Source: Azolla caroliniana (lineage: Eukaryota; Plantae; Polypodiophyta). From it: 64,000 nt of DNA. Positions 7,757 to 49,465 of this stretch are shown piece after piece. The DNA lies in the NCBI GenBank assembly GCA_043228905.1, contig JBHGNT010000014.1, positions 4,030,001-4,094,000 on the forward strand, in the 5' to 3' direction. Below the pieces are notes generated by a model, which saw nothing but the letters and a program-made list of their open reading frames with translations, did not search any database and was not told the origin of the DNA. How positions within the stretch are numbered: position 1 is the first letter of the stretch; every line of letters starts with the position of its first letter. The position numbers and the translations under genes were made by a program.

Positions 7757-7760
7757 CAGT

Positions 7761-7778: not shown

Positions 7779-7794
7779 GACGGGTGGCAAGGAG

Positions 7795-9819: not shown

Positions 9820-9820
9820 G

Positions 9821-15108: not shown

Positions 15109-15149
15109 TGGCACGCCTGTGGGACAGTGCCTTTGCACGTCGGACCCAT
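15109..15149 (-). other. tRNA-like 3' module at the PPT position of B
   Basis: ATGGG TCCG AC GTGC AAAG GCAC TG T CCCAC AGGCGTG CCA, then 2 nt, then the LTR. Confidence 0.8.
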
Positions 15150-23003: not shown

Positions 23004-23043
23004 TGGCACGTCCGTGGGCCAGGACCTTGTCCAGCGAACCCAC
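23004..23043 (-). other. tRNA-like 3' module at the PPT position of D
   Basis: GTGGG TTCG CT GGAC AAG GTCC TG G CCCAC GGACGTG CCA, then 2 nt, then the LTR. Confidence 0.8.
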
Positions 23044-24855
23044 GCCTATTCCTGTAGCTCTTCATCCGAATCGTTCAGAATATCAAAAATCGAAGGCTCT
23101 TCTGGCCTTGGATGTATTCCCTCTATATCTTCCTCTTCTTCTGTGTCACAGTCGTCATTCGGAACAGGTTTTGAATGTTGTGATTCAGTTGGCTGCTCTG
23201 GTTCACTTCTTCCAGGAGTTTGAAGACCAGAAGTCTTGCTGGTTCTTTCAGCTTCAATTTTATCCAACTGAACGGAAGTGCCTATATCATGTTTGTCGAA
23301 TTCTTGCATAATACGTTGAATTTCTTCTCTGTAAAATGCCGCAATTTCGTCCATATCTTTCATGATATCCTCTTGGATATTGTCAATATCCTTTTGTGCT
23401 ATTTTAAAAAAACCTGCACCTTGGACCTGACGGTTATTTTTGTCGGCACGCAATAACTGTAATTCCGCCGCTTGTGCCGTCCATAACTTCCATCCTTGCG
23501 CAAGGGATTCATTGATCATTTCCTTTGCTAGGTTTCGATGTTTCCCTATGATGCGCTGCACTTTGTCCCTAGTGATGCTTGCGACGAATTGAGCGGCTTG
23601 CAACTCTTTCCGTAAATCCGTAATAGTGGCTCGGTTTTCACTTTCAGCCCGCATTAATTTGGATTCGACTACATATATGTCCAGCCGCCTTTGTTCCGAT
23701 ATCTTCCGAATTTCGTTTAGTTGTTGTTCGAATGTCGATTTCTCTTTGTTCCATTCCTCCTGGTGTTCCGTAATTCATCTGTTGACTTCTTCAAGACTCC
23801 GCTCTTTTTCTGTCAATTGACTTTCCTGTGACACTATATACCTTTCGAATTCTTCAATTTGTTCGGTATATGTATGATTGGCCGTCTTAGCTTCTTCCAG
23901 ATTTTTCTGTAATTCGTTTATTAATTGATTTTTTTCTTCGAGAACTTTGTATTGGCCATTCTAAATGGTTTCTATTTGTTTTTCTAATTCTATAGTTCGA
24001 AATACAGCATTGTTGGCCCTTGTTGTTTCTGCTTGTCGTGCTTTCTCAGCATCCTCCAATTTCTGCTGCCATTCTGACTCCGACGCCATAAGCCGTGCCT
24101 GCGTTTCCCATTTGTTTAGACTTTCTTTTAGTTCTTTATTTTCTGCCTGTATGTTACAAAACTGATGTTTCAGCACCTCCGCCGATGCTGATACACTTTT
24201 GTATCTTTCAGCCATATCACTGGCTGCTTTGCGTACCGTTTCATATTCTTTATGAATTTCGACCAGTGCTTCATGTAATGGTGGCATTTCAATAGCCTCC
24301 CCTCTATTCTGTGCACTTCTTTTCCGGCCGATTTTCTCTATCTCTGCTTTTTCTTGAGGTTCCAACACTCCTCGTAAGGCTTTCTGTATCATTATTCGGT
24401 CATTATGTTCTTGAGCCAACCGTTCTGATACTTCTGTCAATCTTTTAGCCAACCATTCAACCAGTTCGTATGAAGTTCCGAACTGTAAAATGGCAGCTAA
24501 TTCATGTGTTGCTGGTGGAATATCCGAGTACCCATGTGCTTCCCGAATTGCTACTTTTGAAGATTGGCCTTGTTGAGGTTGTGTCGAAACGCTCTCATTC
24601 CCTGGTTTTATTACTTCTGCTACTACAGGCGTATTCGAATTTTCCTTTGTGCGTTGCCTTTTCGGTGCTGACCCATCACTGTTTTCTGGTTGGAATTGCC
24701 TATTAGCCTTTTGTTTAACCCTTGTCCTTTGTCGCATCTTCTCTGGTTGTTGTCGATTTTCTGTCGGCTGCTGCTTGTTTATCAAATGGTCCACTGTTTC
24801 TTGTTCGGCTGCTGGTTGCCTGTTTTCGGAATTCTCTGGTCTTGGTGGTTCCGAC

Positions 24856-27800
24856 TGTTGGGATTACGGTCCCTCCGGATGGGATGGTCGGATGTCCGGA
24901 GATGAATGACGACAAGCTCGGTTGCGGTTTCGGAACCGGATGATGAAGACCCCGGCTTCGGAGCCGGATGACGAATGTACCCGGAGAGAGATCCGGATGT
25001 GGGGACATATCTGTGAATATGTTTTCCAAGGGCCCTTGAGGCTATAGTTGTAAATAGCCCTAAAGTCATATGTGTATAAATATGACTTAGGGCAAACAGT
25101 TTTTATGTTGCTACTCATTTTTCTGTTTTTCCACTCAAGAGGAGTGAAGAGAGAGCAGCCGTGAGAGAGATAGAGCGTGAGAGAGGAAGAGGTCGACGCC
25201 TCTGTGTAATTCCGCCGCCTGTGGCGAGGACAGCGAGCTCGAGGTCGTCGCCTTGCAGCTCGCCATTGTATATTTCTCTGTGCATAGTTTTGGTTCGGAG
25301 TCTTATACTCCCGTGGTTTTTCCCGTACAGGGTTTTCCACGTTAAATCGTGTGTCCACTTATTTACTTTTGCATTTCCCATTTTCTGCAACAACGATTCG
25401 TGTGTTTCCTTGGTTGTGGCCGAGAGGTGAAGTTTGGAAAGTGTCGATTATTTCCATCAATTTGGTATCAGAGCAGGCTGCTGCAGAAAATGGAAGGCGG
25501 CGGCAGCGGGCAGCCGGGGATGATGGTGCTGAATGCGCAGAATTACGCCGACTGGAAGATCAAGATGGAGGATCTTCTGATTGTTCGGGACCTGTACGAA
25601 CCGATTGACAGGTCGGAAATACCGAAGGGGGTACTTGAGTCGGAATGGAGGCTTCTGAACCGGAAAGCCGTTGCAACCATTCGGCAATACGTCAACGTGA
25701 GCGTTCTACAACATGTGGCGAACGACATCAACGCATATGAGATGTGGCGGAAGCTGTCGGGCCTCTATGAGAGGAAGAATGCGTTGAACCGGACCTCCCT
25801 GATGAGGAAGATAGTGAACCTCAAGTACCGGGACGGCGAGAGTATGGTGGAACACGTAAGCACGTTCATGGGATTCGTGAACCAGCTTGCGGCGATCAAG
25901 TTCCCGCTGGAGGATGCAATGCAAGCCATCATTCTGATGTGTACATTGCCGGAAAGCTGGGAGAACTTGGTGGTGACTCTCAGCACCTCCTGCACGGAAG
26001 ATAACTTGTCCCTACAAACGGTAAAGACAAGTATTTTGAAGAAGAAGCGCGTCGGAGAGATAAAGAACCGGCCTCCGACTCGAAGGCGCTGCTTACCGAA
26101 TCGGAACGGGGAAGACAATGGAACCGGAGTCCGCAAAGACGGGAGAAGTCGGGGACCCGGTCGCAGTCAAGAGGAAGACCCACATGCTTCCACTGTGGGA
26201 AGCCGGGGCACTTCCGGAAGAATTGTCGGCATTACCGAAAGGACAACGGAGCCGACGACACCGATTCGAAGAAGTCACCGGAGAGAAACGGTGCATACCG
26301 GGGAGCCACGGACCGGAGAGGTCCGGATCGGCGAGGGCAGGACCGGAAAGGAACGACGGCACTCGCGGCAAGTGAGGAAGAAATCATGCTCATCACCGAA
26401 GAAGGTGAACTAAACATTGCCGGCGATGAGACGACCTGGGTGGTCGATTCTGGAGCATCGTTCCACCTGACCCCGGAGAGAAGATACTTCTCATCCTACA
26501 CAGTCGGTGAGCATGGCTGTGTTCGGATGGGAAATGAAGGTACGTGCCGGATTGCCGGCATAGGAGACGTGTGGTTGACAACCTCGACCGGATGCAAAAT
26601 GCTGCTGAAGGATGTCCGACACGTTCCGGAGGTTCGATTGAACCTGATTTCGGCCGGGAGGCTAGACGATGAAGGCTACACAGGTAGCATCCGGAACGGC
26701 GTAATGAAGTTCAGCAAGGGGAGCCTGATAGTGGCTCGGGCCCGGAAAGTCAACACACTGTACCTTATGAATGCCTGGTTGTGTCCGGAAGAGTTGAACG
26801 TGGCAGCCGACACTGCCGGTGAGCTGTGGCACAAGAGACTGTGCCACATGAGTGAGAAGGGGATGAAGAGGCTTGCAGAAGACAACCTCATTCCAGTGAA
26901 GCATGTGCACCTGGAGAAGTGCACCGATTGCCTGGCCGGTAAGCAGAACCGAACCTCCTTCCACTCAAGGCCACCGACGAGACGTAGCGCACCATTGGAG
27001 TTGGTGCACACTGATGTGTGTCAGGTAGAAACGAAGTCACATGGCGGAGCCCAGTACTTCGTAACATTCATTGATGATCACAGCCGGAAGCTGTGGACGG
27101 CACCGTTGAAGACAAAGGACCAAGTGTTGTGCGTCTTCAAAGAACTCCACGCGAGAGTGGAAAGGGAATCCGGCAAGAAGCTGAAAGCGATACGAGCGGA
27201 TAACGGAGGGGAATACCGGGGGCAGTTCGCGGAGTACTGTCGCTCGAAGGGAATCCGGCTCGAGTTTACTGTGCCGAAGACGCCGGAACTGAACGGGCTG
27301 GCCGAGAGGATGAACCGGACCATAATGGAGAGGGTCCGGAGTATGCTGGCGCATGCGGAATTACCCAAGGGGTTTTGGGCTGAGGCGATGTCAACGGCGA
27401 CATACGTGATAAACAGATCACCCTCAATACCTTTGGACGGAGACACGCCGCAGAGAGTGTGGACCGGTAGGGAAGTATCCTACCGGCATCTGAAGGTGTT
27501 CGGGTGTCTCGCATACGTGCATGTGGCAAAGGACCGGAGAGGAAAGCTAGATCCAAAGACCCGGCCATGCATATTCCTCGGTTACGGCGATGACGAGTTC
27601 GGCTACCGAGTATGGGACCCGGTCGACAAGAAGATATTCCGGAGTCGTGATATCATCTTCATGGAGAACAAGACACTCGCCGACTGGGAGTCGGAGAAGA
27701 AGATGAAGAGCTCCAAGTCGACCGGTGAGGATAAACTCTATGAGGAGCAGTCCCGACCGGCAAGGGACCGGTTAACACTCGAAGATCCGGCCGAAGACGG

Positions 27801-30176
27801 TGAAGAAACAGAACCGGCCGAAGAAGATGAAAATGATACCGGAACCGGCCCCGATCCCGAAATGGATTCGGATGAAGAAGAATCGGAAGAACCGGTTACC
27901 GAAGCTCCGGAACGGAGATATCCTCTAAGAGAGAGAAGGGCTCCCCGGAGATTTCCGGAACCAGAGCACGTGCTGCTAACCGACGAGGGGGAGCCGGAGA
28001 GCTTTGAAGAAGCGAAGCATGACACCCATAGCCGCAGGTGGTTAAGTGCCATGCAGGAGGAGATGGATTCCCTGCATGAGAACCACACATATGAACTTGT
28101 GGAGTTGCCGAAAGGAAAACGGGCACTCCGTAACAAGTGGGTGTTCAAGCTGAAACCGGGAGATGCCGGAAACCCCCCGAGATACAAAGCCAGGATCGTG
28201 GTGAAGGGGTTTCAGCAGAAGAAGGGCGTCGACTTCGACGAGATATTTGCCCTGGTAGTGAAGATGACCTCCATCCGGACGGTGCTGAGCATAGCGGCAA
28301 GCATGGACCTCGAGATAGAACAGATGGACGTGAAGACGGCATTCCTTCACGGTGACCTCGAAGAAGAGATCTACATGCAGAAACTGGAAGGATTCGAGAA
28401 GAAAGGGAAGGAGCACCTGGTATGCCGGTTGAAGAAGAGCCTTTACGGTCTGAAGCAGGCTCCCCGGCAATGGTACCGGAAGTTCGACTCCTTCATGACA
28501 GATGAAGGGTACCACAAAACGCAGTCCGATCACTGCGTGTTTGTGAAGAAGTTCGAAGGAGGAGACTTTCTAATACTCCTCCTGTACGTGGACGACGTGT
28601 TGATCGTCGGACGAGACCAGGTCAAGATACGGATGCTGAAGAAGGCTCTTCACCGAACCTTCTCAATGAAGGACCTGGGTCCGGCGAGGCAAATACTAGG
28701 GATGCACATCATCCGGGACCGGAAGAAGAAGCAGTTGTGGCTGTCACAGGAGAAGTACGTGACAAAGGTGCTTCACCGGTTCAACATGTCGGAAGCAAGA
28801 CCGGTCGGGTCAACACTCCCGGCAAACTGCAAGCTGTCCAGCAAGCAGAGCCCCAAGACAAAGGCTGAGAAGGAGGACATGATGAAAGTACCATATGCCT
28901 CTGCCGTCGGGAGCTTGATGTACGCAATGGTGTGTACCCGACCGGACATAGGATATGCAGTCGGAGTGGTGAGCCGGTACATGAGCAATCCCGGCAAAGA
29001 GCATTGGAACGCGGCCAAGTGGATACTCCGATACCTGAAGGGCACGGCAAACGTGTGCCTCCGATTCGGCTCCGGTAAGCCCGAACTCGACGGCTTCACC
29101 GATTCGGATATGTCGGCTGATGCAGATACCAGCCGGTCCACATCAGGGTATGTGATGACGTATGCAGGGGGAGCTGTTTCATGGCAGTCGAGGCTGCAGA
29201 AGACGGTTGCGTTGTCAACCACGGAGGCGGAGTACATGGCGGCTGTTGAAGCCGGCAAGGAAATAATATGGATGAAGGACTTCATTAGAGAGCTCGGTAT
29301 CCGGCAGGAGGAGTACCGACTCTACTGCGACAGTCAGAGTGCAATCCACCTTGCGAAGAACGCGGCCTATCACTCCCGGACGAAGCACATCCAGCGAAGA
29401 TATCACTGGATCCGGGAAAGGATAGAAGACAAGGAGTTCGTGCTGACGAAGATCCACACGGACGAGAACGGGTCGGATATGCTGACCAAGGTGCTCACAC
29501 CCGACAAGTTGGAAGCATGCCGGAAGAGGATCGGATTGGAGAGACATCCCATGCCGAAGTGAAGGGGGAGTTTGTTGGGATTACGGTCCCTCCGGATGGG
29601 ATGGTCGGATGTCCGGAGATGAATGACGACAAGCCCGGTTGCGGTTTCGGAACCGGATGATGAAGACCCCGGCTTCGGAGCCGGATGATGAATGTACCCG
29701 GAGAGAGATCCGGATGCGGGGACATATCTGTGAATATGTTTTCCAAGGGCCCTTGAGGCTATAGTTGTAAATAGCCCTAAAGTCATATGTGTATAAATAT
29801 GACTTAGGGCAAACAGTTTTTATGTTGCTACTCATTTTTCTGTTTTTCCACTCAAGAGGAGTGAAGAGAGAGCAGCCGTGAGAGAGATAGAGCGTGAGAG
29901 AGGAAGAGGTCGACGCCTCTGTGTAATTCCGCCGCCTGTGGCGAGGACAGCGAGCTCAAGGTCGTCGCCTTGCAGCTCGCCATTGTATATTTCTCTGTGC
30001 ATAGTTTTGGTTCGGAGTCTTGTACTCCCGTGGTTTTTCCCGTAGAGGGTTTTCCACGTTAAATCGTGTGTCCACTTATTTACTTTTGCATTTCCCATTT
30101 TCTGCAACAACGATTCGTGTGTTTCCTTGGTTGTGGCCGAGAGGTGAAGTTTGGAAAGTGTCGATTATTTCCATCA
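24856..30176 (+). mobile_element. Copia F, full length (Tork/Tnt1-Tto1-like)
   Basis: 604-bp LTRs 24856-25459 and 29573-30176 (6 substitutions); TSD CCGAC; PBS TGGTATCAGAGC at 25463; PPT GAAGGGGGAG at 29561. Confidence 0.97.
25490..29562 (+). CDS. Copia gag-pol polyprotein with one frameshift near 26040
   Basis: VDSGAS, LWHKRLCH, integrase D-D-E, YVDD, RNase H; a 1-bp loss breaks ILNEEARR. Confidence 0.93.
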
Positions 30177-31231: not shown

Positions 31232-34200
31232 TTACTCTTCCGTTTGAATAAACGGATTTACCGGCATATCTCCCAAATACGGTTTAAGCCGGAATCCATT
31301 TACCCATTTCGGTAAAACCTCTCCGGTTAATGATCCCAGCTGATACGTACCACTTTTACTATTAATTATCCATACTGGACCTGTCCATCTATACCGGAGT
31401 TTCCCAAGCATAAGTCCCATTCTCGTCTGGAATACCAATACCGGTTTCCCAATTTCGAATTGCTCTTCCGATTTCCTTCGATGTCGATTTACGAATGCCT
31501 TGATTTGTCTCTGCTTGTGTTCTAGTGCTGACATTGATTGAATCCGTTCTTCTTCTAATACTAATAAAGCCTCTTTGCGTATCTGCTCTGATTCTATTTC
31601 ATTTAACTTATTCGTCACTTGGAGACAAAGTGTCGGAATTTGAAATTCGATCAGCATAACGGCTTCAAGTCCGAATGCCATTCGGAAAGGTGTTGATTTA
31701 ATGGATGTTTTGTACGAAGTACGATATGCCCATAATGCACTATTTAACTTTTGATCCCAATCAGTACGATTTTCATTCACTATCTTCTTTAAAATTGTTT
31801 GAATTGTTTTATTTGTCGATTCTGCCAATCCATTAGCTTGGGGATAGTAAGGCGTACTTTTCTTATGAACTACGGCATAGTAATTGGTTAATTCGTTAAT
31901 TAACTTGTTAATAAAATGAGTGCCTTGATCGCTTACCAATTCTATTGGGCAACCGAATCGACACCATATATTTTCATACAGGAATTTTGTTGTGGATGCT
32001 GCTGTATTGTCCCTGAGAGCTTTTGCTTCAACCCATTTTGTGCAATAGTCAGTCGCGATTATGATATATCGATTACCGGTTCTTGCAGCTGCTGGTTTGA
32101 ATGGGCCAACAAAATCTAAGCCCCATTTCTGAAATGGCTCAAGAGGTAAAACCGGTTGAAAAGGCATTCGATCCTTTTCGGTCAGTTGCCCCATTCTTTG
32201 ACACAAATCGCATTTCTTACAGTATTCGTTAGCATCTTTCATCACCGTTGGCCACCATAACCCGCTATTCCATATTTTTCTGGCTGTTGCTTCTCCTGCG
32301 TAATGACCGCCAGCAATTCCACAATGTGACTCTGTTAATATGGCTGATTTTTCAAATTTCCGTACTGCCCTTCGCCATATTCCATCCGCTCCTTTATGAT
32401 ACAACATGTCATTAAATAAACAAAAATTTCGACTTCGTACTGCAATTCTTTTTCTTACATCTGTCGACATGTGTTCGGCCGGAATTCCTGTTGATAGAAA
32501 TATCGTCATTTCGGAAATCCATTCATCCTCTTTTTCCTCATTCACTTCTTGTGCTTTTACTGCCTCAACCCGAAATAATTGAGTATCTGGAAAATCATCT
32601 TTAACCCCAACCGCTTCTTCTCCAGACTCAAGCCGACTGAGATAGTCAGCAATCGCGTGCTGTGCTCCTGGTCGATGTATAATGTCGAATTCAAACTCTT
32701 GAAGCAATAACGTCCATCTGGCTAACTTGCCTGTCAATTCTTGTTTGGAAACTAGATACAATAGAGCCGAATGATCCACATGAAATGTAAATTTCTTACC
32801 CAAAAGGTAATGTCGAAATTTGTTCACACTATATATCATTCCCAAAGCTTCTCTTTCGGTTGTTGAATAGTTTCTTTCAGCCGACGAAAGTTTCCTACTG
32901 GCATAGTATACCGGCCTATACCAGTTTGGTTCGGATAATTGCATTAAAGCACTGCCTATGGCAATGTCCGACGCATCGACGAAAACATGAAATGGTTTGT
33001 TCCAGTCCGGTGGTTGAACTACCGGAACCTTTGTCAGCATCTTCTTGAGACATTCGTATGCATCTTGTTCTATACTTGTCCATATAAAAGGAACTTTGTG
33101 TACTGCTGTGTGTAACGGAATAGCAATGTCTGCTAGATATCTCATCATTCTACTGTGCCACCGAATTTGACCCAAAAATCTACTTAGAGCTTTAGCATTT
33201 GTTGGTGGTGTTGCCTCAATAATTGCTTTAACTTTGTCTGGGTCCACTACAATCCCTTCTTGACTGACAATATGCCCAAGTAACGTACCACTCATTACTC
33301 CGAATGCGCATTTGGCTGGATTTAAGCTAAGACGCCCTTTTCGACATTTTTCTAAACATAGCCGTAAATGCTCAAAATGATCAGCTTTCCGACTATATAC
33401 CGCAAAATCATCTAAAAACACCTGCATGAAAGCTGGAATATATTCCCCGAATATTTCTTGTATTACCCGCTGAAATGTAGCTGGAGTTGTTTTTAAACCG
33501 AACATCATTACTACTGCCACAAAGACACCCCATTCTGTGACGAAAGCTGTCTTTTCCTGATCTTCCGGATTCATCCGTACTTGGTTGTACCCACTGAACC
33601 CATCCAAGAAACTATAAATTTCATGTCCCGCTACTGCATCTAATATCCCATCTGTGAATGGCAACGGAAACGCATCCGTAATTGTCGCTGCATTCAATTT
33701 TCTGTAATCCACACATACGCGAATTTTCCCATTCTTTTTCGGGACTACTACTATCGGACTCAGCCATGTTGATTTTTTGACGGGTCGAATAAATCCTACT
33801 TTTAAGAGTTTATCGATTTCTTCTTTTACTTTGATAGCATAATTCGGATTCAACCTGTACCTGCGTTGTTGTACTGGCTTTGCATCTTTATGCAAATTGA
33901 TTTGATGTTGACAAAAAGCGGGATCCAAACCTTTCATATCGTCAAACGACCATGCAAAAACATCTTTATATTGTAATAGTAATGTTGTTAATGTCCGTTT
34001 GTCATTTTCCGCCAAATCTCTAGCAATCAAGACTGTTTTTCTTTCAGCATCCTCTACTCCTGCCAAATCGATCTCCTCCAATGCTGAGGCTTGCACTCTC
34101 TGAGATACCTTCATTTCCTTATCTGTAGCTTCTTGTTGCATTCGTATTTCTTTCATTGTTTGCTCATCTATTGGCACTTCTTCGTGTGAGTCTACATATG

Positions 34201-36727
34201 GTGTTAATGCTTGCAAAATATCTACCTCAAACAGAGGGATGATTTTCTGATTATCATTGAAATACTGACTTTCTTCTTCCTCGTCCAACCCTTCCATCAT
34301 ATTAACTGCTTCTGCATGTATAGGTAAACTCTGTTTGCTTGTTGTCACTTTGTTGTGCGTCGAAATCCTGACCTTAGTTTTTCCTTTCCTAAATGTTAGC
34401 ACATTTTTTTGTTTCCAATTTTGTTTAATATTAGCTGTCTTTAACCATGGTCTCCCCAATAACAAGGGGTATGCTCCCTGTGTTTCTAACTGCAAAATTA
34501 CTGCCGAAATCTGAAAACTGTGTCCCCCGATTATTACATCCAGTTGTCGAAGCAAACCAATCGGGCGTACCGTACTTGTATCTGCCATTCGTAACCAAAA
34601 CGGACATGCTTCCCATTCCGTGATTCCCAGTCTTTCACATGTAGCTTTGTTAATCACATTAACTCCCGAGCCTCCATCTATAATCACATTTCCGATTTCT
34701 TGCCCGTAAAGTATTACCTTAATCGACGAATTCTGTTCATCCATGATCGAAGGGTTATTACTTGGCTGATTGTAGTGTACTGCTATTTGTTCGGAACCTT
34801 TATATGCAATTAATGCTGCCACTTTTTCTGTAAACCTTGGTACTAACTTAAGTAAGCCCGTAAGTGGCAATGACACTTGGCAATCAGCCAACAGTTTCCA
34901 AGTTTCTTCCTGTTCCTTATTCCCCAATGACTGTTGTACAGCGATGTTCTGGTCAATGTTATTGTCTTGTAACATTCGATTCACATTACTTTGATTTGCT
35001 TCGTCAACCCATTCTTTTGCCGCCTTCCGAACTTCTTCCTGAATTTCCCACTCTGATTGTTTGCTTTTGCTGCGTGTCGTTACTTGCTGAACTTCCGGTA
35101 TTACCATATTAACTGCTGGACCCTTTCCTTTAACCGGACATTGATTAGCATAATGGCCTAGTTGTCGACAAATATAACAAGTGGGTACAAATGTTGCACT
35201 GGTCTCTCCATGTGCAAATTGGCCGTTATTAAATTGCTGCTCTTCATTACCACTCGGGTTTTGTTGGTATTGACGTGTAGCTTTTGGTTTGTAAAATCTC
35301 TTGTTTTTATACCGATTCTGCCTAAATTGTTCAGTATTATCATTTGGTTGTGCTACATTTTGTGTTATCCCGAACTCCTGATTTGGCGGAAAATTATTCT
35401 GTTGAAACATTTGATTATTTTGTGGAACGGTTTGAGTATTATGTTGAAAGGTCATATTACTCGGTTGAAATGCCGGATTTGGTTGAAATGTAGAATTCAG
35501 TTGCACATTCGGACAGTTCTGTTGAAACCCTTGAAATGGTGGGTTACCTTGTTGGAAACTTTGATTATTTTGTTGAAAATATTGATTCGGATTCTGTACG
35601 AATGGTGGGTTGGATTGAGCAAAACCTGGTTGAAATGCTTGAGTCACTTGAGTGGGTTGCATATTTTGTTGTGAAAAGATCTGATTCGGCTGTAGAACCG
35701 GATTTTGTTGTACATTTTGCTGATTTTGTGAAAAATTATTATTTTGATAACCATTGAACAGATTAGTGTTATTTTGGTAACCATTGTCAGTAAAAATTTG
35801 TCGTACTGACGCCGTAGTCTTATTAAGCAGATTATATTCACATTGTTCTACTGAATGTAATTTTGAATGACATATTGTACAATGTGTTCTTAACGTACAT
35901 TCAATTGCCGAATGCCCCGTATTTAAACAAGTGGTGCATTGAACTGCTTGTCGAAATTGTAACTCCTCTATTGTTGGTAATGTACGGTGAAATGCCGACA
36001 TGTCCATACTCTGAACATTGACCGGTGGTCGACCCATTTCTATTGCTTTATCAATTACTTGTTCGATAGTCTGATTTCGAAAATCGAACACTTTCAATGT
36101 CGTCCTTAATGGTTCTTTTACAGCTTCCAGAAAGACTTCTTTTAATTCATTATCCGGAATCGGCCTTGAAATCTGAAGCTGTAAGTTCTGAAATCGTATC
36201 ACAAACTGAGATACTGTTTCATTTTTTTCTTGATATAACGCATAAAATTGCGCAATCAAATCCTTCTGCGGAATTTGTTGATGAAATAATTGTAAAAATT
36301 TACTAGTTAACACTTCAAAGGATGGAAATCCTTGAAGACCGTTCTGCGCAAACCAATTGGCAGCATATCCGTCTAATGATAAGACGAACTCAACGATTTT
36401 TGACTTATCTTCGGCATCTGCCGACAATTGTTGAGCTCCATTGTTAATCTCCCATGTCGTTAAGAAATCCCTAACATGTGCTTCCGCATCTGTTCCTTCC
36501 CGGAACTTAGAATAAGTATAAGGCATATCGTCCCAAATGTCGTAAAACGATACCTCTTTCGTCTGTTTTTCGTCTGAAGGTAATTGATCGGATAAGTCAG
36601 GAAGTTTCGACCACTTTGTGCTTGATTCCGGCTGTTCTTGCGAAATGAACGCTTCCTGCACTGCCTTCGTAACTGACCTTGTACGAGGGCGCTTACAACT
36701 GACCGGTGTCTCCTCTTTATACGACAT
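31232..36727 (-). CDS. Intact single gag-pol ORF of D, 1831 aa
   Basis: Gag with three CCHC knuckles and a Q/N-rich tract, IIDGGSGVN, QVFLDDF, RNase H followed directly by DDFPD..LF and integrase; no archaeal-type RNase H, no chromodomain. Confidence 0.96.
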   Translation of the reverse strand: MSYKEETPVSCKRPRTRSVTKAVQEAFISQEQPESSTKWSKLPDLSDQLPSDEKQTKEVSFYDIWDDMPYTYSKFREGTDAEAHVRDFLTTWEINNGAQQLSADAEDKSKIVEFVLSLDGYAANWFAQNGLQGFPSFEVLTSKFLQLFHQQIPQKDLIAQFYALYQEKNETVSQFVIRFQNLQLQISRPIPDNELKEVFLEAVKEPLRTTLKVFDFRNQTIEQVIDKAIEMGRPPVNVQSMDMSAFHRTLPTIEELQFRQAVQCTTCLNTGHSAIECTLRTHCTICHSKLHSVEQCEYNLLNKTTASVRQIFTDNGYQNNTNLFNGYQNNNFSQNQQNVQQNPVLQPNQIFSQQNMQPTQVTQAFQPGFAQSNPPFVQNPNQYFQQNNQSFQQGNPPFQGFQQNCPNVQLNSTFQPNPAFQPSNMTFQHNTQTVPQNNQMFQQNNFPPNQEFGITQNVAQPNDNTEQFRQNRYKNKRFYKPKATRQYQQNPSGNEEQQFNNGQFAHGETSATFVPTCYICRQLGHYANQCPVKGKGPAVNMVIPEVQQVTTRSKSKQSEWEIQEEVRKAAKEWVDEANQSNVNRMLQDNNIDQNIAVQQSLGNKEQEETWKLLADCQVSLPLTGLLKLVPRFTEKVAALIAYKGSEQIAVHYNQPSNNPSIMDEQNSSIKVILYGQEIGNVIIDGGSGVNVINKATCERLGITEWEACPFWLRMADTSTVRPIGLLRQLDVIIGGHSFQISAVILQLETQGAYPLLLGRPWLKTANIKQNWKQKNVLTFRKGKTKVRISTHNKVTTSKQSLPIHAEAVNMMEGLDEEEESQYFNDNQKIIPLFEVDILQALTPYVDSHEEVPIDEQTMKEIRMQQEATDKEMKVSQRVQASALEEIDLAGVEDAERKTVLIARDLAENDKRTLTTLLLQYKDVFAWSFDDMKGLDPAFCQHQINLHKDAKPVQQRRYRLNPNYAIKVKEEIDKLLKVGFIRPVKKSTWLSPIVVVPKKNGKIRVCVDYRKLNAATITDAFPLPFTDGILDAVAGHEIYSFLDGFSGYNQVRMNPEDQEKTAFVTEWGVFVAVVMMFGLKTTPATFQRVIQEIFGEYIPAFMQVFLDDFAVYSRKADHFEHLRLCLEKCRKGRLSLNPAKCAFGVMSGTLLGHIVSQEGIVVDPDKVKAIIEATPPTNAKALSRFLGQIRWHSRMMRYLADIAIPLHTAVHKVPFIWTSIEQDAYECLKKMLTKVPVVQPPDWNKPFHVFVDASDIAIGSALMQLSEPNWYRPVYYASRKLSSAERNYSTTEREALGMIYSVNKFRHYLLGKKFTFHVDHSALLYLVSKQELTGKLARWTLLLQEFEFDIIHRPGAQHAIADYLSRLESGEEAVGVKDDFPDTQLFRVEAVKAQEVNEEKEDEWISEMTIFLSTGIPAEHMSTDVRKRIAVRSRNFCLFNDMLYHKGADGIWRRAVRKFEKSAILTESHCGIAGGHYAGEATARKIWNSGLWWPTVMKDANEYCKKCDLCQRMGQLTEKDRMPFQPVLPLEPFQKWGLDFVGPFKPAAARTGNRYIIIATDYCTKWVEAKALRDNTAASTTKFLYENIWCRFGCPIELVSDQGTHFINKLINELTNYYAVVHKKSTPYYPQANGLAESTNKTIQTILKKIVNENRTDWDQKLNSALWAYRTSYKTSIKSTPFRMAFGLEAVMLIEFQIPTLCLQVTNKLNEIESEQIRKEALLVLEEERIQSMSALEHKQRQIKAFVNRHRRKSEEQFEIGKPVLVFQTRMGLMLGKLRYRWTGPVWIINSKSGTYQLGSLTGEVLPKWVNGFRLKPYLGDMPVNPFIQTEE

Positions 36728-39663
36728 CCATTCGATTTGTTCTCTGCTTAATTGCAGATGTAACCGGGCGTGCCAAAATTCTTCTGTGTTAATCGGCTAA
36801 TTACTAACTACTACCGATACAGAAGAGTGAACGTCGCTACTCAACGTTCTAACAAGGAATTGTGTTTTACGAACGGAATTATACTATATTTATCGGTAAT
36901 TACCGTGATCGTTACTTAGTTATAAATTAGGAAGCTTGCACTTAACAACATAGACAATAGAAAGAACACAGAATCCGTACAGGATATTCCTAACTTAAAC
37001 TTATATTACTAAATAAAACGACCTTTCTTACAATGCCTTCGGTTCCCTTTTATAGGTATACCGAAGGTCTTTTCTCATCAAGAACTATTCCTACTTACTA
37101 TCAAGAATTACAAAATTATCTAACTAACTTAGTTCTCTTCGTTTACTGCTGAGTCATTGATCCGAACAGTCGATCCGAACCGACTCCGTTTTCGACGCTT
37201 TCCCACTTGTTCGGTAAAACTGACTGTCCGGGTCCGGGTAACAGTGTTAGTCCCACCAGTGCTCCCCATCACACAAAAGAAAAGAGGTCGGCAGGAGACG
37301 ACGCCGAAAAAGGTCACAAAGCACCGACAGATCCTGGAGAAACACACCCCTGGATGGACCCAACAAGAAGCAGAACAGCGGGGGGAAGGACCATCCCGAC
37401 AGCAACAGGAACCGGCAACAAAGGCAAAACCGGCAGGTAAAGGCAAAGGGAAATCAGCCGAGAAGGAACCGGTAGCGCGCAAACTAATCCATATAACGCT
37501 GCGATGGCCGGAACCGGAACCAGAGGTCTTTATACAAAAGGTCCGTCTGGTAACCGCACCGGAGGAGGAAGCTGAAACAGAAGACTCATCCGAACCATTG
37601 GTAAGACTCCCAGCAAGACAAGGTCGGGAGAGAAGGGCGAAAGGACCGGCTCCACCAGTTGACATAACTCAGCAGAGGGCGCAAGGACCACCTCCAGTAG
37701 CCGAGGCGGAAGCAGTACCGGAACTCGTACCAAGGGAAGCAGCACCAACACCGGTGGTGCCGGACTTCAGAGAACCGGTCATCCCAGAGAAGAAGAATGA
37801 ACAAGCGCCGGAGCCAGAGAAAAGGCCGGAAAAACAGCCTGAGTTAAGTGAGCAAGGCCACCCCGACACAGGAAGAAAAAAGCCACAATGGCTGAGATGG
37901 CTTTCGGAGCAGTTATCGGGAGTAGCGGACCAGTTAGAGAAAGAAGAAACGTGTAGGCAACAGCTGACGCATACAACTACTCAGGAGTTGGTCGCGCTCC
38001 AAACACAGATCGAGGAAATGCAAGGGGAGTTGTTGCAGGCAAGGGAAGGAATTCAACAAGCACAAGTTGTCACCGAGCCGGTCGGGACAACAAGGAAGCA
38101 ACCAGAACCGGAACCGGTAGCCTTGCAAACCGGCCCTGAGACCGAAAAAATAATAGAAACCTTACGAGAGGAGTTAAAAGCTCAGGAGGCATTAAGGGAA
38201 AGAGAAAGGGAGCAGCGGAAAGCGGTGGAGGACGACAGACGAAAAATGGAAGAAGGCCTTCGGAAAGGTCGAGCCGCTAATGACCGACTGCAAGAAGAAA
38301 AAGAGAAGCTGCAAAAGGAGAAGGACCGACTGCGTCGACATGCCGAGCAGGAGATAGAACGACTGCAGGAAGAACTCCGACAATAGAAGGACCGGGACGA
38401 TCGGTTAAGAGCTCAGGCAAACCGACGCCTAAAGCAGAAGACAGAGGACTTCGACCGTCTCTACCGAGATCACAAGCAGGCCGAGTCGGACAACAAGAAA
38501 CGGGCAGCAGACTACGACCGGCAAATAGAGAAGCTGAAAGAACAGCTCAAAGAGACCCGATTAGACCTGGCTAAGGCAATAGATGAGGTCAGTGCCAACA
38601 AGGAAGCATTGTCGGCGGAAATAGCCCAAGCGACGGAGAGAAGGAAGGAATTAGAGGCGCTAAGGCGGGAAAAGCTGGACCTAACCAAGATCAGGAATGA
38701 AGAAAAGGAAAAATCGACCTTCACGATCAGCAAACTGCAAATTACCTATGAAAAGCAGAAAGCGGATTACGAGGCCCAGGCTCAGATAATGGCCGACATT
38801 ATAAAACGGGCAAGGAAAGAAAAGCAAGAAGCTTATGCGCATGCTAAGGCGGGGGTTGACCGGATCAAGCTCATCATGTCAGGATGGAGTACCCGAGCTC
38901 AGGCAAGCATCAACGAAAGTACGGAAAAGCTATGGAAGGAGTGGTCACAACAGGCAACCGAGCTGCAGACACTCCGAGCGGATGCCGAGAATCGGAGGAA
39001 GACTGGTGACAAGTTCTACAAGATGGATGAAGAAAGTATCGTCGCCATTCGGGAAGAATTGTCGGAGGATTTCTACACTTTAGCGGAAGAACATCTCAAG
39101 GAAATCTGAGGGTTGGTAGAGAGGTTGGATGACGGGCAGCTCGCAACTCAGTTGGAGTTGGAGAGATACGAGCAGGACCGGTTACGACAGGAAGCTAAGG
39201 GAAGAACGACGCCAATCACTATAAGTGAGGGAGAGCGACCGGCTGAAGTTGAACCAACCGACACCGAACAACCCCGACGAGGAATACTCGAAGAAGAACT
39301 TCCGTTCGAAGGAGAAGAAGAAGAGCCGGAGCAGACCGATGCCGGAGAAGAAGAAGAGCTTAGACCGGAAGACACCAGAGCAGAGGAAGGAGGCATATCG
39401 AGCCAACCAGTCGAGACCGGAGAAAGCGACACTGGTAACAGAACAGAGCCAGGAATGGAGGGAGAACAGGAAGAACCCGGACGAAGCGGTGAGGAAGCAC
39501 CGGCACCACAGAATCAAGCAGAGCCGGAGCAGCAAATTTTTACGGAACAACCAACCCAACCGGAGGTCGGAGACCAGGCAGGCAAGGAACAGGAGGAAGA
39601 AGCACCACTTGACACCATCGAGCAGAGTGTGCTCGATATTTTGGAGGAAGAATAAGGCCGGGA

Positions 39664-39703
39664 GTGGATTCGAAGTGCAAGGCACTTTCCCACGGGCGTG
39701 CCA
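39664..39703 (+). other. tRNA-like 3' module at the PPT position of C
   Basis: GTGGA TTCG AA GTGC AAG GCAC TT T CCCAC GGGCGTG CCA, then TG, then the LTR. Confidence 0.82.
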
Positions 39704-42700
39704 TGTGTTGGCCGGTCAGAAGAGCAAGGACAAGTGGGAAGGCGGAGTCGGATCGGATAATAGGAAGTAAATAATAGTAGAATTATTATTCGGAGGGACG
39801 GATCCGGTACAGTTGTACCGATCCGGATCCGGTACAGTTGTACCGATCCGGATCCGGACCGATTCGGATGTCGGTTGCCTAAGCGCACCGATTGTAACCT
39901 TGCCGGATGCCTATAAAAGGATCCGATGATTTGTAAAGGGTTTGACGGAAGTAATACAATAGTAATTATTGCGTGTTTATCTGTATCTTCGTATTGTTTA
40001 CCGTCTGTGCTTAATTGTAATCATCTTACGCGTGTAACCTAGCATCTAATCCTTCCCACCCCTTTGGAGAAGTGTCGGATAGACACCTGTGTTGAGGCTA
40101 GTCCGGCCAGGCAGACAACAGGGCGTGGGGCGAGGATTCCGCCTGGTCTGCACTATTTTCCGCGTTTTCTGAAGATGGTGTGGGTTGAACCTCTTGTTGG
40201 TTAATGGTTTCGCTGTCTGGTCCTGTGGGGAACTCCGCTCATTCGTCTCCGCTATTCTCCCCCGTTGTCCTCCCTAGTGATCGGGCCTGAGGTTCCTCTT
40301 CTTCGACTGTGACTGGAATTGGTGTCCCGTTGGGTTCCTCGTTCATGTGCGTGTTGCCGGTTTGTGGGATCTGGTGAAATAGCTCCTCCTGACTTTCACC
40401 AAAATCTTCTAGGAGTTGTGCGAGTTCTTCGAAGTGTTGGTCTGCTAACGCGCGATAGTCTTGCGCTAGGTCCTCCCGTACGGTCGCAATGCTCTCCTCG
40501 TTTAGCTTATAAAACCCTCGGCCGTCTTTCCGCCGGTTCTCCCAGTCCGCACGATACGCGTGCAATTCCGCTGCTTGGGTTGCCCACGCCATCCATCCTT
40601 TCTCCAACGCCATTTTCAATTGCACTGTGAACCTTTCCCAGTTGGTCTGGAGAAGGATGCGCACGTTATCCATGATGGCCTGGCAACGGTTGCGTGCGTC
40701 TTCCATCGACTTCTGGAGATTCGCGATTTCCTGTTGTTTAACGGTTGCCGCTTCCTCGTACGTGGCTTTCAGGCCCACCCACAGTTGGGATTCCTTTTCA
40801 TGTTGTTCTTCTAATTTCCCCATTTCATTGTTTAGGCGGATTTCGAGTTGATGCCTTCTGTCTTGTTCGACTACCAACTGCTCATCGAACCATACCTTCT
40901 TTTTTTCTAATAAGGCCCGAAGTCCCGCTATTGCCGCCTCTGATTTCTTCGCGTCCTCTCATAAGTGGGCGTTGTCGTCTTTTGGCCGGATGTGTTGGGC
41001 TACCTCCGTAGCTAGTTTCTCTTCAAGCATTTTTACGGCCTTTCGTCCGCTAGCCCGTATCTCCTTTTCTCTGTCGGAAGATTGGCGTAGTTCTGCTCGA
41101 AGACGGTCAATTTCGGATTCCGCTAACTGCACGGCCCTTTTTGCTTTTGAGGCGATGGCGGTCTGAGCCTCGATTTCTTCTTTGAGAGCGTTGATAACGT
41201 GGTTCGGTGGCGGAGTTTCGTGTTGCGCTGTGGTTGTGTGAGCTTCCAACTCCGCGATGCGTGCGTTGGCCTTTTGTACTTCGGCTTCCGTCAGTTTCAC
41301 CTTCTTCCAGACATTCTTATTTTTTATGGCCATCTCCTTGGCGCCCGTGCTGACCTTTGCCAGTTCCCGATGGACTTCGACTAGGGTCGTGTTTAAGGGT
41401 GGTATCTCCATCCCTACTAGCCGTACCCCGGCGTTCCTCTGTCTGCCGACCCTGGCTAGCCGGTCCTCATCGTCGCTCTCCGTTGTTTGCGTTAGGGTGC
41501 GCTCTATCATCTGACGTTCCGCATGCTCCTCGGCCATTCGTTGGGCGGATTTGACCTGTTGTGTTGCTAGGAACTCCATGAGCTCGAAAGAGGTACCGAA
41601 CTGCAAGAGGGCGCTGAATTCGTGGGCCGTATCCGGAATATCCGGATATGCCAAAACCTCGCTTTCCGCCATCAATACGGCTTTCCCTCGTTGGGACTGA
41701 GTCGTAATAATCGGTTGCGGCTCCCGGATGATTTCGAAGGTGGTATTCGGCTCTGCTGTTGCAGGGCCTTCGCCTGCGGTCGGTGCCTCCGGATCCGTGG
41801 GGGCGTTTTTCACCAACCCCCGCCCATATTTTTTGTCCAATCAGCGCTGTTTTGGTCTAGGGCTTTCCCGTCGTGCTTCAGTGTCTGGTTCTGGGGCTGC
41901 TTCCATGGGGTGTCTCGGCTGTTCCTCCTGCGTCGCCCGTGTGTCCGGTTGGTCGATAGGAGGTGTTGTCCTTGGGCCTGGTTGGGCCGGTTGGGGTTCC
42001 TCCTCCCACTCTGGGGCCGCTAACTCTGCTAACCTGCGTTTCGCAGAGCGGGGTGGGGTCGTGGGTTAGCTGGGCTGTGGTGCTGGCAGGCCTCGGGGTG
42101 GAAATAGTACCGTAAGGTATTGTTGGATGATTGGCCTGAGCTTTTTGCCTGCTTGGTACGCATGCAAGCCTTCCCTTAACGTCGGCCTTGTGATGACCCC
42201 CCAATCGACTGTACGCCCTTCAAAGGTGTCGATAATGATGCATGCCTTCTGTTTAGGCATCCCGTAAGCGTTGACATGGACACAGCCGACTTCTAGTAGG
42301 AACTTGGCAACTTCACGGAAGAAGGGATCCAGAATCTGTTTTGTTCTATAGGCCTTGGCGGAGGATGAATATGGGCCAAAATACCGCTGTAGCGCCTCTA
42401 TAGGAGGTATTTCGAAATGTCTTTCGCCTAGTGAGGATAGGTCTAACTTCTTCCGAATGGAAGAGTTGGTGACCGTGTCGATGTTAAGCCGCTTGGCGAT
42501 GTCCATGGCGTCTGGGTGCGGAGGTGATTCTGCGACCCGAATGTAACCATCCAGGCGCTTCTCCACGAGCCATCGGCGTAGGGCAGTAGAGATGAAGATC
42601 GACATCGCCAGAGTAGGTTCGTGGAGAGGAGACGGGTAGCAGTGGTGAGTTGGAGCTCTGAGATATGATGGGGAAGAAGGTGAGGAGGAGTGATGGGAGC

Positions 42701-42894: not shown

Positions 42895-45800
42895 CTATTT
42901 TAACATTATAGTACAAATGGGATTGTCCCTTTTACGTTGCTGGTTCTCCGGCTTTGTCCCATTCGGCGGTGAATGGGTTAGGTGGCGTGGGCCCAGGTAA
43001 GGTTTGAGCCGAAACCCATTCACTTTTTGCCGTACTATTTCTCCAGCCAGCGTTCCTAGTTGGAACGTGCCCTGTTCCGCTTCGATTATCGAGTATGGGC
43101 CGGTCCAGCGGAAACGTAGCTTCCCCGACATCTGGCCCATGCGCGTTTGAAAAACTAGGACCGCTCAGCCCACGGCGAACTCCTTTTCCCTTGCGCTCCG
43201 ATGTCGATCGACAAACGCTTTACGCCGTCTCTATTCCTCTTCCAACACAACCATGTTGTGGACGCGTTTTTCCCCTAGTTCGAGGAGTTGGTAGAGCCGT
43301 TCCTCCTCTGACTTGGCTTTTGATAATCGGTTCCGTACCTGAATGCGCAAACTAGGTACCCGAAATTCGACCAACATCACAGCTTCTAGTCCAAACGCTA
43401 GCTGGAACAGTGTTGACTGTATGCTTGTTTTGTAATTAGTTCTGTACGCCCATAACGCACTCTGGAGTTTGGTATCCCAGTCCGTTCTATTTTCATTGAC
43501 GGTTTTCTTCAAAATGGTCTGTAAAGTTTTGTTCGTGGATTCCGCTAATCCATTCGCCTGCGGGTAGTATGGCGTGCTCTTCTTGTGGACTACTGCGTAA
43601 TGCTGTGTTAGTTCCCGAACCACCGTATTGAGAAAGTGGCTCCCCTGGTCACTGATGAGCTCAATCGGGTAGCCGAACAGGCACCAGATGTGCTCGTATA
43701 GAAATTTGGCTGTGACGGCCGCCGTATTTTCCCGTAGTGCCTTTGCTTCTACCCATTTGGTATAGTAATCCATGGCTACCAATATGTATTTGTTGCCCGT
43801 ACGGGCTGCTGTTTGTGTGAAGGGCCCTACAAAATCCAATCCCCACTTTTGGAAGGGGTCCAACGGTAATACGGGCTGGTGTGGCATCCTTGCGTCCTCC
43901 ACGGGCTGACCCATCCGTTGGCACAAATCACACTTTCTACAATACTCGGACGCGTCCATCTGCGTTGTTGGCCACCATAAGCCCGCCTGCCATACTTTGC
44001 GGGCTGTCACGTTGCCCGCGTAATGCCCGCTAGCCGTGCCGCAGTGTGCCTCCCGTAAAATTGCTTCTTTTTCATCCTGACGGACTCCACGTCGCCAAAT
44101 GCCGTCACTCCCTTTGTGATATAAATTCCCTTCGACCAGGCAGAAGTGACGGCTTCGGACGGCTAGTCGTTTCTTCTCATCTGTGCGTAATTGTGGTGGA
44201 GGTAGTCCTGTAGTTAAAAAGTACGTCATTTCCATAAGCCATCGATCCGGAAAGGTGGATTCCGTTTTTTCTGCAAATGTCACTTCTCGCCAGATGTCGG
44301 CGTCCGAAAAATCGTCGTCGTCTTTCTGTACTGTTTCTCCATTCTCAAGTCTACTCAAAAAATCCGCCACTGCGTGTTGCGTCCCTGGCCGGTGCTTAAT
44401 TACGAACTCGAATTCCTGGAGCAGCAGCATCCACCGCGCCAATTTCCCTGTCAGGGCTTGTTTCTCCACCAAATACAATAATGCCGAATGATCCATGTGG
44501 AACGTGAATTTCCGTCCTAGTAAATAATGTCGGAATTTATTGATGCTATAGATCATCCCTAGCGCCTCCCGCTCTGTTGTGGAATAGTTACACTCTGCTG
44601 CTGACAATTTCCGACTTGCGTAGTATACTAGCCTGTACCAGTTTGGTTCGGTGAGTTGCATTAGCGCGCTTCCTATTGCTATGTCCGAGGCGTCGACGAA
44701 CACGTGGAATGGCTTCGCCCAAACTGGAGGTTGTACGATGGGGGCCTGTGTGAGCATTATCTTCAGTGCCTCATAGGCCTTATCCTCCTTTGCAGTCCAT
44801 TGGAAAGGAGTCTGATGTACGGCAGCGTGTCGTGGCGTGGCGAAGTCCGCCAAATACCGTATCATCCGACTATGCCACCGTATTTGGCCCAGAAACCGGC
44901 TAAGTGATTTGGCATTTGTCGGAGTTTTAGCTTGCGTAATAGCGGAGATTTTGTTTGGGTCGACCGCTATTCCTTCCTTACTGACAATGTGGCCTAGGAG
45001 AGTCCCGTTGGTCACGCCGAAGGCACATTTCGCGGGATTCAGGCTTAAGCGTGCGGTGCGGCAACGTTCCAGGCACAGACGTAAGTGCAAGAAATGGTCT
45101 TTTGTTCGCCCATATACCGCAAAATCGTCTAGAAAGACTTGCATGAACGCCGGAATGTATTCCCCAAAGATCTCCGTAATCGTTCGTTGGAATGTTTCCG
45201 GCGCTGTCTTTAGCTCGAACATCATGACGACCGCCACATATACTCCCCAGTCCGTGACAAATGCCGTCTTCTCCTGATCCTCGGGGTGCATGCGTACTTG
45301 GTTATAGCCACTGAAGCCATCTAAGAAATTGTACATCTAATGGCCTGCGACGGCGTCTAGCACGGTATCGGTGAAGGGTAAGGGAAATGCGTCCGTAATG
45401 GTTACGGCATTTAATTTCCGGTAATCCACGCATACCCGTATTTTGCTGTTTTTCTTTGGGACAACCACTATCGGGCTAAGCCATGTTGCTTGTTTCACTG
45501 GCCGTATGAACCCCACCCTCAGCAGGTTGTCAATTTCTTCTTTCACGTGGGTCGCGTAATTGGGGTTCATGCGGTAGCGGCGCTGCTGGACAGGTTTCAT
45601 GTCTGTTGCTAAATTGATCTTATGCTGATAGAACTTGGGATCTAACCCCTTCATGTCCTCGTGAGCCCACGCGAACACATCTTTATAGTCCGTGAGTAGT
45701 GCGATCATTGTGGTTCTCTGGTCCGGCCTCAATTCCTTTGCTATGGAGAGGAACCGGGGTTCCGATCCCGTACCCACATTCACTTCGTCGAGAGCGGAAG

Positions 45801-48288: not shown

Positions 48289-49465
48289 CCATTCGTTGTT
48301 GCTCGTCTATGAGGAAACACAGATCACCAAGCGTGCTAAAAGTGTTGCCTCTTAGGAACACGGTTCATGGTTAGTCCTTCGACCTAGACCCCAAGATGGG
48401 TGTGGAACAACGAACAAAGCTTAAGCGTACTGCATAAGGAGAGAACCTCTATGATTCCTCCGTGTGTACGGGGAGACGGCTACAACCGACTCCTTATCAC
48501 AGGTTGCACTTACGTACTACTACGCTTACGTATCCGAGACACAGACACTGAATTAGTCGCAGCTATACACAAAAACTCAGAGAAGATAGTATTTTATTAT
48601 CAGGTGTTCTTTTACATTTCCCAAAAATTACACGCACCTCGTTAAGAGGTTTTTTGCCCTTTATATCTGCAGGGTCTAATTAACCATTCACGCTTCCCGC
48701 GTGAACCGTTACATACGTTACGCTTATATAGTTTCTTATTCCTACGCTTTTGGCCGTTGGTTACTATTCCGGTGGACAACAGTTCCCGGATGCCGGACAG
48801 CTAGCGCACAATTCTTGCTCGGCCGTTGGTTAACAAGCAGCGAGCACAGGGGCTCAGGATGGAGATGCATACGGAGACAAGATGGAGATGCATACTCAAC
48901 ACAGAGAGAACAATCGGATACAATGAAAATGAAATAGATTAAACAAGAGAGGAATACAACCGGACTCGGCCAGTGTCAGAGCTACGTGCTCTCGAGACAC
49001 GCGCGCGCGCAGGAACACAGAATGATGAAACTCTGGTTGAGAGCTCACGGGATTCCTATGCGAGTAGAGGCTTCACCTTCTTCCTCTAATGAGTACAACA
49101 CATGAGACAGAGAGAGGGAGAGAGCTTGGCACTGAAACCGACAACACTTTGTCCTCCAAAACGTGGATCCCTCAAACAGGCTCAAGCCTCCCCTTTTATA
49201 GCACAAGGGGAGGTCGTTACATCGTGATCAGTGTCAACCTTTCTTAGAAAGATTTTCCCTGATTTCCTCACATCAAATTCTCGTATTCCTCTCTATCTGT
49301 GCGGGACTTGACGTTCCCATTAAATCCTACCCCCTACTACTTTCTAGTTCTAAGTTATTTACATATGTTTGTACATAAAGACTTAACTTTTGTGTGAATC
49401 CATGCACACACTCGTTCATGTGCATTCGGCTCCGTTTCTCTCTATGGTCGGAATCCTTTACGACA

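Follow-up and report, generated by a model that had tools for sequence, protein, structure and literature searches.

How does a long terminal repeat (LTR) retrotransposon define the start of its plus strand once its polypurine tract (PPT) has been lost? Retroviruses and LTR retrotransposons are assumed to prime their plus strand invariably from a PPT, and the tract is among the criteria of annotation tools. The question is raised by a 64,000-nucleotide (nt) stretch of Azolla caroliniana DNA (assembly GCA_043228905.1, contig JBHGNT010000014.1, positions 4,030,001–4,094,000 of the forward strand; hereafter the window), which is a nest of LTR retrotransposons and contains three Ty3/gypsy elements, B, C, and D. 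We find that in one clade of bryophyte-type gypsy elements, to which B, C, and D belong, the PPT has given way to a sense copy of a tRNA's 3' portion.

The replacement is a module of 42–43 nt that begins straight after the stop codon of the last open reading frame (ORF) in B, C, and D and follows the plan GTGGG-TTCGA, covarying hairpin, CCCAC, RGRCGTGCCA, 2 nt, and the TG of the 3' LTR. In C (39662–39703, + strand, 64.9 bits with the covariance model described below), it comprises GTGGA-TTCGAA, the hairpin GTGC-AAG-GCAC, CCCAC, and the tail GGGCGTGCCA (39694–39703), and a TG spacer at 39704–39705 separates its CCA from the 3' LTR. The D module (23004–23045, − strand, 60.3 bits) is built from GTGGG-TTCG, the hairpin GGAC-AAG-GTCC, CCCAC, and the tail GGACGTGCCA (23004–23013), and the B module (15109–15151, − strand, 58.9 bits) from ATGGG-TCCGAC, the hairpin GTGC-AAAG-GCAC, CCCAC, and the tail AGGCGTGCCA. 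The complete modules read GAGTGGATTCGAAGTGCAAGGCACTTTCCCACGGGCGTGCCA plus TG in C, GCGTGGGTTCGCTGGACAAGGTCCTGGCCCACGGACGTGCCA plus AG in D, and GGATGGGTCCGACGTGCAAAGGCACTGTCCCACAGGCGTGCCA plus GG in B, each followed by the LTR, so that CCA lies 2 nt from the LTR in all three. The 15-mer CCCACRGRCGTGCCA is found three times in the window (39689–39703, + strand; 23004–23018 and 15109–15123, − strand), where 0.21 occurrences are expected, and none of 100 shuffled sequences reaches three. The first-pass annotation had placed a site at the 3' end of the internal region of B, C, and D, in the gag-pol sense and with its CCA exactly 2 nt before the 3' LTR. Position checks and the pattern count recover all three sites adjoining the 3' LTRs, the strands of the Pfam matches agree (+ for C, − for D and B), and the spacing is the one described; the module is thus real, but its extent had been given too short.

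No purine tract is present within ∼45 nt of the U3 border in the module elements. The last 15 nt before the 3' LTRs of B, C, and D contain 8–9 purines, and the longest purine run in their last 20 nt is 3. Across the 10 modules scored, those of related elements included, no purine run in the final 20 nt exceeds 3, and the last 20 nt of an 11th, decayed copy (L039) read alike. By comparison, a copia element in the window and the gypsy elements L001, L101, L102, and L091 have 12–15 purines in 15 positions and runs of 10–17, which bears out the earlier remark that B, C, and D have no PPT.

B, C, and D have the paired TG...CA LTRs, the 5-bp target duplications, and the domain order of Ty3/gypsy elements. 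Four elements were defined in the window by direct repeats, ungapped extension, and global alignment: C (+) sits inside B (−), D (−) inside C, and the copia element inside D. The LTRs of C (5' LTR 15434–15823 and 3' LTR 39706–40120, + strand; the latter reads TGTTGG...ACAACA and carries a TATA-like box in sense) are 98.7% identical and flanked by the target duplication GGGCG. Those of D (5' LTR 36787–37243 and 3' LTR 22553–23001, − strand; the latter starts TGTTAC and is preceded by the AG spacer at 23002–23003) are 99.6% identical, with the duplication GTGTT, and those of B (5' LTR 48343–48781 and 3' LTR 14668–15106, − strand, with the GG spacer at 15107–15108) are 95.0% identical, with the duplication GTTCC. 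The B 3' LTR starts with TCTTGTCC (TCTTGT), a point mutation of TGTTGTCC (TGTTGT), which is found in the B 5' LTR and in the related elements L021 and L033. B, C, and D are genuine transposed copies, two of them very young, and their perfect target duplications and LTR identities of 95–99.6% establish that elements really lacking a PPT have nevertheless been mobile.

Pfam matches to Retrotrans_gag, RVT_1, RT_RNaseH, Integrase_H2C2, and rve define the order gag, reverse transcriptase (RT), RNase H, and integrase. They locate a gag-pol polyprotein ORF of 1831 amino acids in D (31232–36727, − strand), a pol ORF with RT, RNase H, and integrase in C (17825–21328, + strand), and a pol ORF fragment with the same three domains in B (43231–45336, − strand). 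Neither a chromodomain nor a second RNase H is among the Pfam matches of B, C, and D or of the relatives of the D polyprotein. The module elements are non-chromovirus Ty3/gypsy elements, and the PPT is the sole tested feature that is out of line.

We gathered relatives by fetching the contigs of protein-search matches and by scanning metagenome contigs with an integrase profile. The nearest named relatives of the D polyprotein, from the liverworts Riccia and Marchantia, are 45–49% identical; nearer ones come from ENA, Logan, and JGI assemblies. Eight further modules were found at the same place, in L004, L021, L033, L092, and L039 and in the more distant L003, L005, and L104. All relatives share a common plan of GTGG(G), a TTCGA-like stretch, a hairpin, (C)CCAC, a 10–12-nt tail ending GTGCCA, 1–2 nt, and TGTT. 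CCA precedes the TG by 2 nt in 10 of the 11 modules and by 1 nt in L005. Ten modules share an unvarying terminal GTGCCA across elements that are only ∼52% identical in integrase, and the decayed L039 ends GTGCTA. The distance from the stem base to U3 is 12 nt in the eight crown modules and in L005, 13 nt in L003, and 14 nt in L104.

The hairpin stems differ among elements (GTGC/GCAC, GGAC/GTCC, GCGC/GCGC, GGGC/GCCC, GTAC/GTAC, CATTTGTC/GACAAATG, and AGATTTT/AAAATCT), with further stem sequences contributed by L039, L003, L005, and L104. For the structure given above, an alignment of seven crown sequences has 92% paired cells, and two pairs (six cells) are changed on both sides; only 1 of 500 shuffles scores as high, and structures slid along the alignment reach at most 51% paired cells. 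Covariation, and not stability, is what supports the hairpin. When the seven crown sequences were used to build a covariance model, it recovered all seven and one new member, L039 (52 bits), and missed the basal modules with longer hairpins (L003, L005, and L104). A pattern scan of viral contigs returned only 14 unrelated matches, on contigs that are apparently not retroelements. The covariance model also gave a weak module-like match inside L022 (2271–2307; hairpin plus CCCACGAGCATGCCA, E value 0.18), away from any LTR; we did not count it as a module, and it is probably a decayed or rearranged copy.

When Logan contigs from four runs (three coded organisms and a leaf metagenome) were mapped on positions 39200–40130, the bin 39680–39711 was the deepest by far in each, the depth being summed from contigs and not a copy number. 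None of the variants shown falls within 39669–39743 (49 further variants are not displayed), and at the loose ends of the contigs other LTR sequences follow the same GTGCCA. The depth pattern fits a module that is common to many families.

An integrase tree of 35 rows (quick IQ-TREE; L039 and L104 are not on it) places all module elements in one clade of 19 rows with an SH-aLRT support of 98. The nearest outgroups, Riccia L001, the L102/L091 group, and L101, keep a PPT of the type AAAAAGGGGGATAA just before TGTT. With the module confined to a single clade and a PPT in the nearest outgroups, the module is a derived PPT replacement that arose once, and it has since been kept across mobile elements. 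Some PPT-keeping relatives also have a hairpin, 18–21 nt upstream of the LTR (L102 9797–9848, L091 ∼14975–15020, and L001 ∼20870–20906), with stems such as AGTTCTG-AGGA-CAGAACT and GGAC-A-GTCC. A hairpin beside the site of the plus-strand primer may therefore predate the module.

We next consider what the module resembles. ARAGORN finds no tRNA gene in the window or in 99 loci, and Rfam gives no match at the modules even at E values up to 10. The module contains a T arm, a 3' acceptor strand, a discriminator G, and CCA; it is devoid of a 5' acceptor strand, a D arm, and an anticodon arm and forms no cloverleaf, and its T loop is split by the hairpin. The first-pass annotation spoke of a tRNA-like module. 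What stands is that the sequence copies, in sense, a tRNA-type 3' end including CCA; for a 3' half whose T loop holds a hairpin, which has no 5' acceptor strand and is called as a tRNA by neither program, the name overstates the likeness. The stretch GTGGGTTCGA...CCCAC corresponds to the T arm GTGGGTTCGAGTCCCAC of human tRNA-Arg-TCT (PMC13267816; bioRxiv 2023.05.16.540835). D and L021 have a 12-nt primer-binding site (PBS), TGGCACGCCCGG, equal to the complement of the tail, and the PBS of B and L033 (TGGCACGCCTGG) differs from that complement by one change, in line with the earlier proposal that the module, read from the other strand, mirrors a PBS. Judged by these matches, the tail appears to be a real primer-tRNA end, and the encoded CCA speaks for a mature tRNA as the template from which the sequence was once copied. 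A target preference for tRNA genes was rejected as a source of the tRNA-like sequence, because the module is internal to the element and no copy of it precedes the 5' LTRs.

The PBSs themselves record a history. Putative PBSs, assigned as TGG-initial 12-mers, lie 4–11 nt after the 5' LTRs of the window elements. The D PBS TGGCACGCCCGG (36764–36775, − strand), 11 nt past the LTR, is the complement of the tRNA-type tail, and the B PBS TAGCACGCTTGG (48327–48338, − strand) is a decayed form of TGGCACGCCTGG in L033. The C PBS TGGTGACCACGA (15830–15841, + strand) is not complementary to the module; the consensus of its family is TGGCGACCACGA, which is also the PBS of L004 and L039, is mutated in C to TGGTGACC, and is backed by a Logan loose end at 40120. 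L003 has the PBS TGGCGACTCCGC, L005 has TGGCGATCCTGC, and the PPT-type outgroups L102 and L001 have a TGGCGACCATGC-type PBS. The TGGCGA-type PBS, being shared by PPT outgroups and by basal and C-type module elements, would then be ancestral. From these sequences the module appears to have arisen under a TGGCGA-type primer, the D and B/L021 subgroups having later moved their PBS to the tRNA represented in the module. That C, L004, L039, L003, and L005 retain the module together with another PBS type points to a role separate from minus-strand priming.

Two observations on the PBS region stand beside this. The PBS is unusually distant from the 5' LTR, by 11 nt in D (36776–36786), 6 nt in C (15824–15829), and 4 nt in B (48339–48342), and the integrase of these elements may trim long ends. 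A small hairpin follows the PBS after 3–6 nt in C (15845–15857), D (36744–36757, − strand), L021 (∼5535–5550), and L033 (∼4222–4237), with the different stems CTGCA/TGCAG, CTGC/GCAG, GCTGTGA/TCACAGC, and CTGTG/CACAG. Together with the module hairpin, both LTR-proximal primer sites are therefore flanked by a hairpin on their inner side.

In LTR elements the 3' end of the plus-strand primer determines where U3 begins, and integrase trims the two extra bases beyond TG/CA, as is established for retroviruses and Ty3 (Ty3 review). Since there is no purine tract, the primer has to terminate at the CCA or right beside it, and by this logic of LTR-element replication the module must mark the plus-strand start site. 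As to the primer, we tentatively favor, as a reading somewhat short of evenly likely, that host tRNAs prime both strands, the plus strand from the CCA end of a tRNA-Arg(UCU), so that the PPT became dispensable. After minus-strand synthesis and RNase H digestion, the tail complement 5'-TGGCACGYCC-3' on the minus-strand DNA, 2 nt from U3, would constitute a mirror-image PBS. A co-packaged host tRNA of the tRNA-Arg(UCU) type would anneal there via its 3'-terminal 7–12 nt, its natural CCA-3'OH would be extended through U3-R-U5, the tRNA would be removed by RNase H as for the minus-strand primer, and integrase would trim the two extra nt. Priming by a host tRNA would account for the presence of a tRNA end with CCA, for its exact 2-nt distance from TG, and for the symmetry with the PBS side (CA-N-TGG), including the PBS-proximal hairpin. 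A tail newly copied from a co-packaged tRNA could, moreover, function at once.

Several points weigh against host-tRNA priming. We know of no precedent for a tRNA that primes the plus strand on a DNA template. The complementarity between tail and tRNA is short, with 7–11 contiguous nt and a 1-nt deletion in the crown, and basal tails carry a T where the crown has a C (GGGTGTG versus GGGCGTG). The model tRNA is a putative host tRNA-Arg(UCU), an assignment that leans on the D/L021 PBS as a proxy, on the human T arm, and on a plant tRNA-Arg(UCU) presumably ending in CCCACCGGGCGTGCCA. The conserved stem and hairpin are unneeded for simple tRNA annealing, and single-sequence fold energies, calculated as RNA or as minus-strand DNA, are no better than those of shuffles (z −2.3 to +1.1). 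Finally, the switch of the D and B subgroups to a PBS for the same tRNA suits priming by a host tRNA and a specialized RNase H cut equally.

Such a cut is the basis of the next best explanation, in which the RNA of the element itself primes: the tail ...GGGCGUGCCA would act as a non-purine PPT cleaved by RNase H just after CCA, with the hairpin upstream possibly stalling RT or placing it for the cut. We regard this as possible, though rather doubtful. It would be the smallest departure from the known mechanism, and specialized RNase H cuts have been established for Ty3 at both of the junctions concerned, PPT/U3 and tRNA-DNA (Ty3 review). The stem base lies 12 nt from U3 in nine modules, near the ∼13 bp that separate the polymerase site of Ty3 RT from its RNase H site (Ty3 review), but 13 and 14 nt away in L003 and L104. 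The hairpin in the PPT-keeping relatives L102, L091, and L001 is possibly an old priming signal that would suit this explanation as well. Cleavage of the element's own RNA leaves unexplained, however, why a tRNA end should have been copied together with its CCA. The copied tRNA is not the one that served as the ancestral minus-strand primer, to judge by the TGGCGAC-type PBS of outgroups and basal members, and a freshly copied tRNA sequence would at once have to serve as an RNase H-resistant primer.

It appears unlikely that the module acts mainly at the RNA level, as a tRNA mimic that binds RT or nucleocapsid or as an aid to packaging, stability, transport, or strand transfer, with the real primer being something unrecognized. 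The conservation of stem and hairpin with covariation and the location in the 3' untranslated part, immediately behind the stop codon, would suit such a role. Some primer must still end at the U3 border, however, where no purine tract is available; the strict 2-nt spacing and the invariant 3' bases are what a primer end predicts, and a cloverleaf is lacking.

Pairing of the tail with the element's own PBS, which would either close the genomic RNA 5' to 3' or allow a cleaved module to self-prime the minus strand as in Tf1, is quite improbable. In L021, B, and D, 10–11 of 12 nt are complementary, but L033 has two mismatches, and C, L004, L039, L003, and L005 carry the module together with another PBS type. 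The module-matching PBS is the derived state on the tree, and plus-strand priming would be left unexplained. The PBS history thus argues that neither tail-PBS pairing nor self-priming is the general function of the module. We also rejected a fold-back of the minus-strand 3' end (the PBS complement) on the module complement as a primer, since it produces an incorrect junction and is unworkable in C or L005. That the module has no function, being left over from a tRNA copy or similar to a tRNA by chance, as the weak fold energies alone might suggest, is very improbable: it occurs 11 times at one and the same place, in elements with as little as ∼52% integrase identity, its terminal bases are invariant and its hairpin shows compensatory changes, and the 15-mer is in excess in the window.

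The module elements share with yeast Ty3 and canonical Metaviridae the TG...CA LTRs, 5-bp duplications, gag-RT-RNase H-integrase order, a putative PBS after the 5' LTR, and a primer site abutting U3; they differ in having a sense tRNA 3' end with CCA in place of the purine tract and a PBS 4–11 nt from the LTR. Ty3 itself uses a tRNA-related sequence near its 3' LTR in replication, as part of a bipartite 5'-3' PBS in which the T arm of tRNAiMet pairs with U3 (Ty3 review). That 3' segment, however, is antisense to the tRNA, serves minus-strand initiation, and coexists with a PPT, whereas the module runs in the tRNA sense and takes the place of the PPT. No counterpart of the Ty3 3' segment, with its complementarity to the primer tRNA, was found in the module elements; the module is complementary to the PBS instead. 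Self-priming in Tf1/Sushi and half-tRNA priming in copia also depart from the standard primer choice, but they concern the minus strand, and we know of no departure of this sort that alters the plus-strand primer. Helenus/TRIMp3 and Cassandra are LTR elements that carry small-RNA-derived sequence, namely a tRNA-like RNA polymerase III unit or a 5S unit inside the LTR of non-autonomous elements that keep a PPT (PMC10886601). The module, unlike the tRNA-like unit of Helenus/TRIMp3, lies in the internal region of autonomous elements without a PPT. In the Mauriceville retroplasmid, with its RT, and in plant RNA viruses, a tRNA-like CCA end is a start signal for the polymerase. Those ends are true 3' ends of the template, whereas the CCA of the module is internal, 2 nt before U3, and has no cloverleaf.

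The first-pass annotation knew of no description of such a feature, and our literature search found no report of a tRNA-end sequence in place of a PPT; subscription journals lay mostly outside this search, and an earlier description is possible. The supplements of a plant LTR survey contained no PBS string. An abundant and recently mobile clade with a tRNA 3' end at this site indicates that the plus-strand primer signal is exchangeable. It offers a natural system for asking what RT and RNase H need at the U3 border and whether a host tRNA can prime on DNA. Pipelines for LTR annotation will score these families wrongly if they demand a PPT, and the module provides a sharp sequence marker for the clade. 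Should dual-tRNA priming be true, the RNase H-resistant PPT, otherwise universal among retroviruses and LTR elements, would have become dispensable.

Further features of the window and its relatives were noted. A long coding region without a Pfam match follows the integrase in C (37157–39655), D (23049–23774), and B (15157–15510) and ends in an acidic tail (...ILEEE) just 5' of the module; in L005 this region is fused into a 2764-amino-acid polyprotein, after about position 5800. The motif CAAGTGGGAA(A/G)G, located ∼25–45 nt inside U3, is common to C, D, L004, and L092 despite otherwise dissimilar LTRs (15459–15468, 39731–39740, 22958–22967, and 37200–37209). The copia element nested in D (24856–30176), which served as the internal control, has the normal PPT GAAGTGAAGGGGGAG and the flanking repeat CCGAC. 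A short element at 7085–10547 has LTR-like repeats (7085–7756 and 9876–10547) and a 703-amino-acid ORF without a Pfam match; both terminal repeats contain an antisense TGG-initial stretch (∼7120–7200 in the first) that reads like a tRNA with GGTTCGAATC on the opposite strand. ARAGORN calls no tRNA there, and the element may be Helenus/TRIMp3-like. Two families of direct repeats of ∼200–256 nt, tandem or dispersed, occupy positions 3261–4816.

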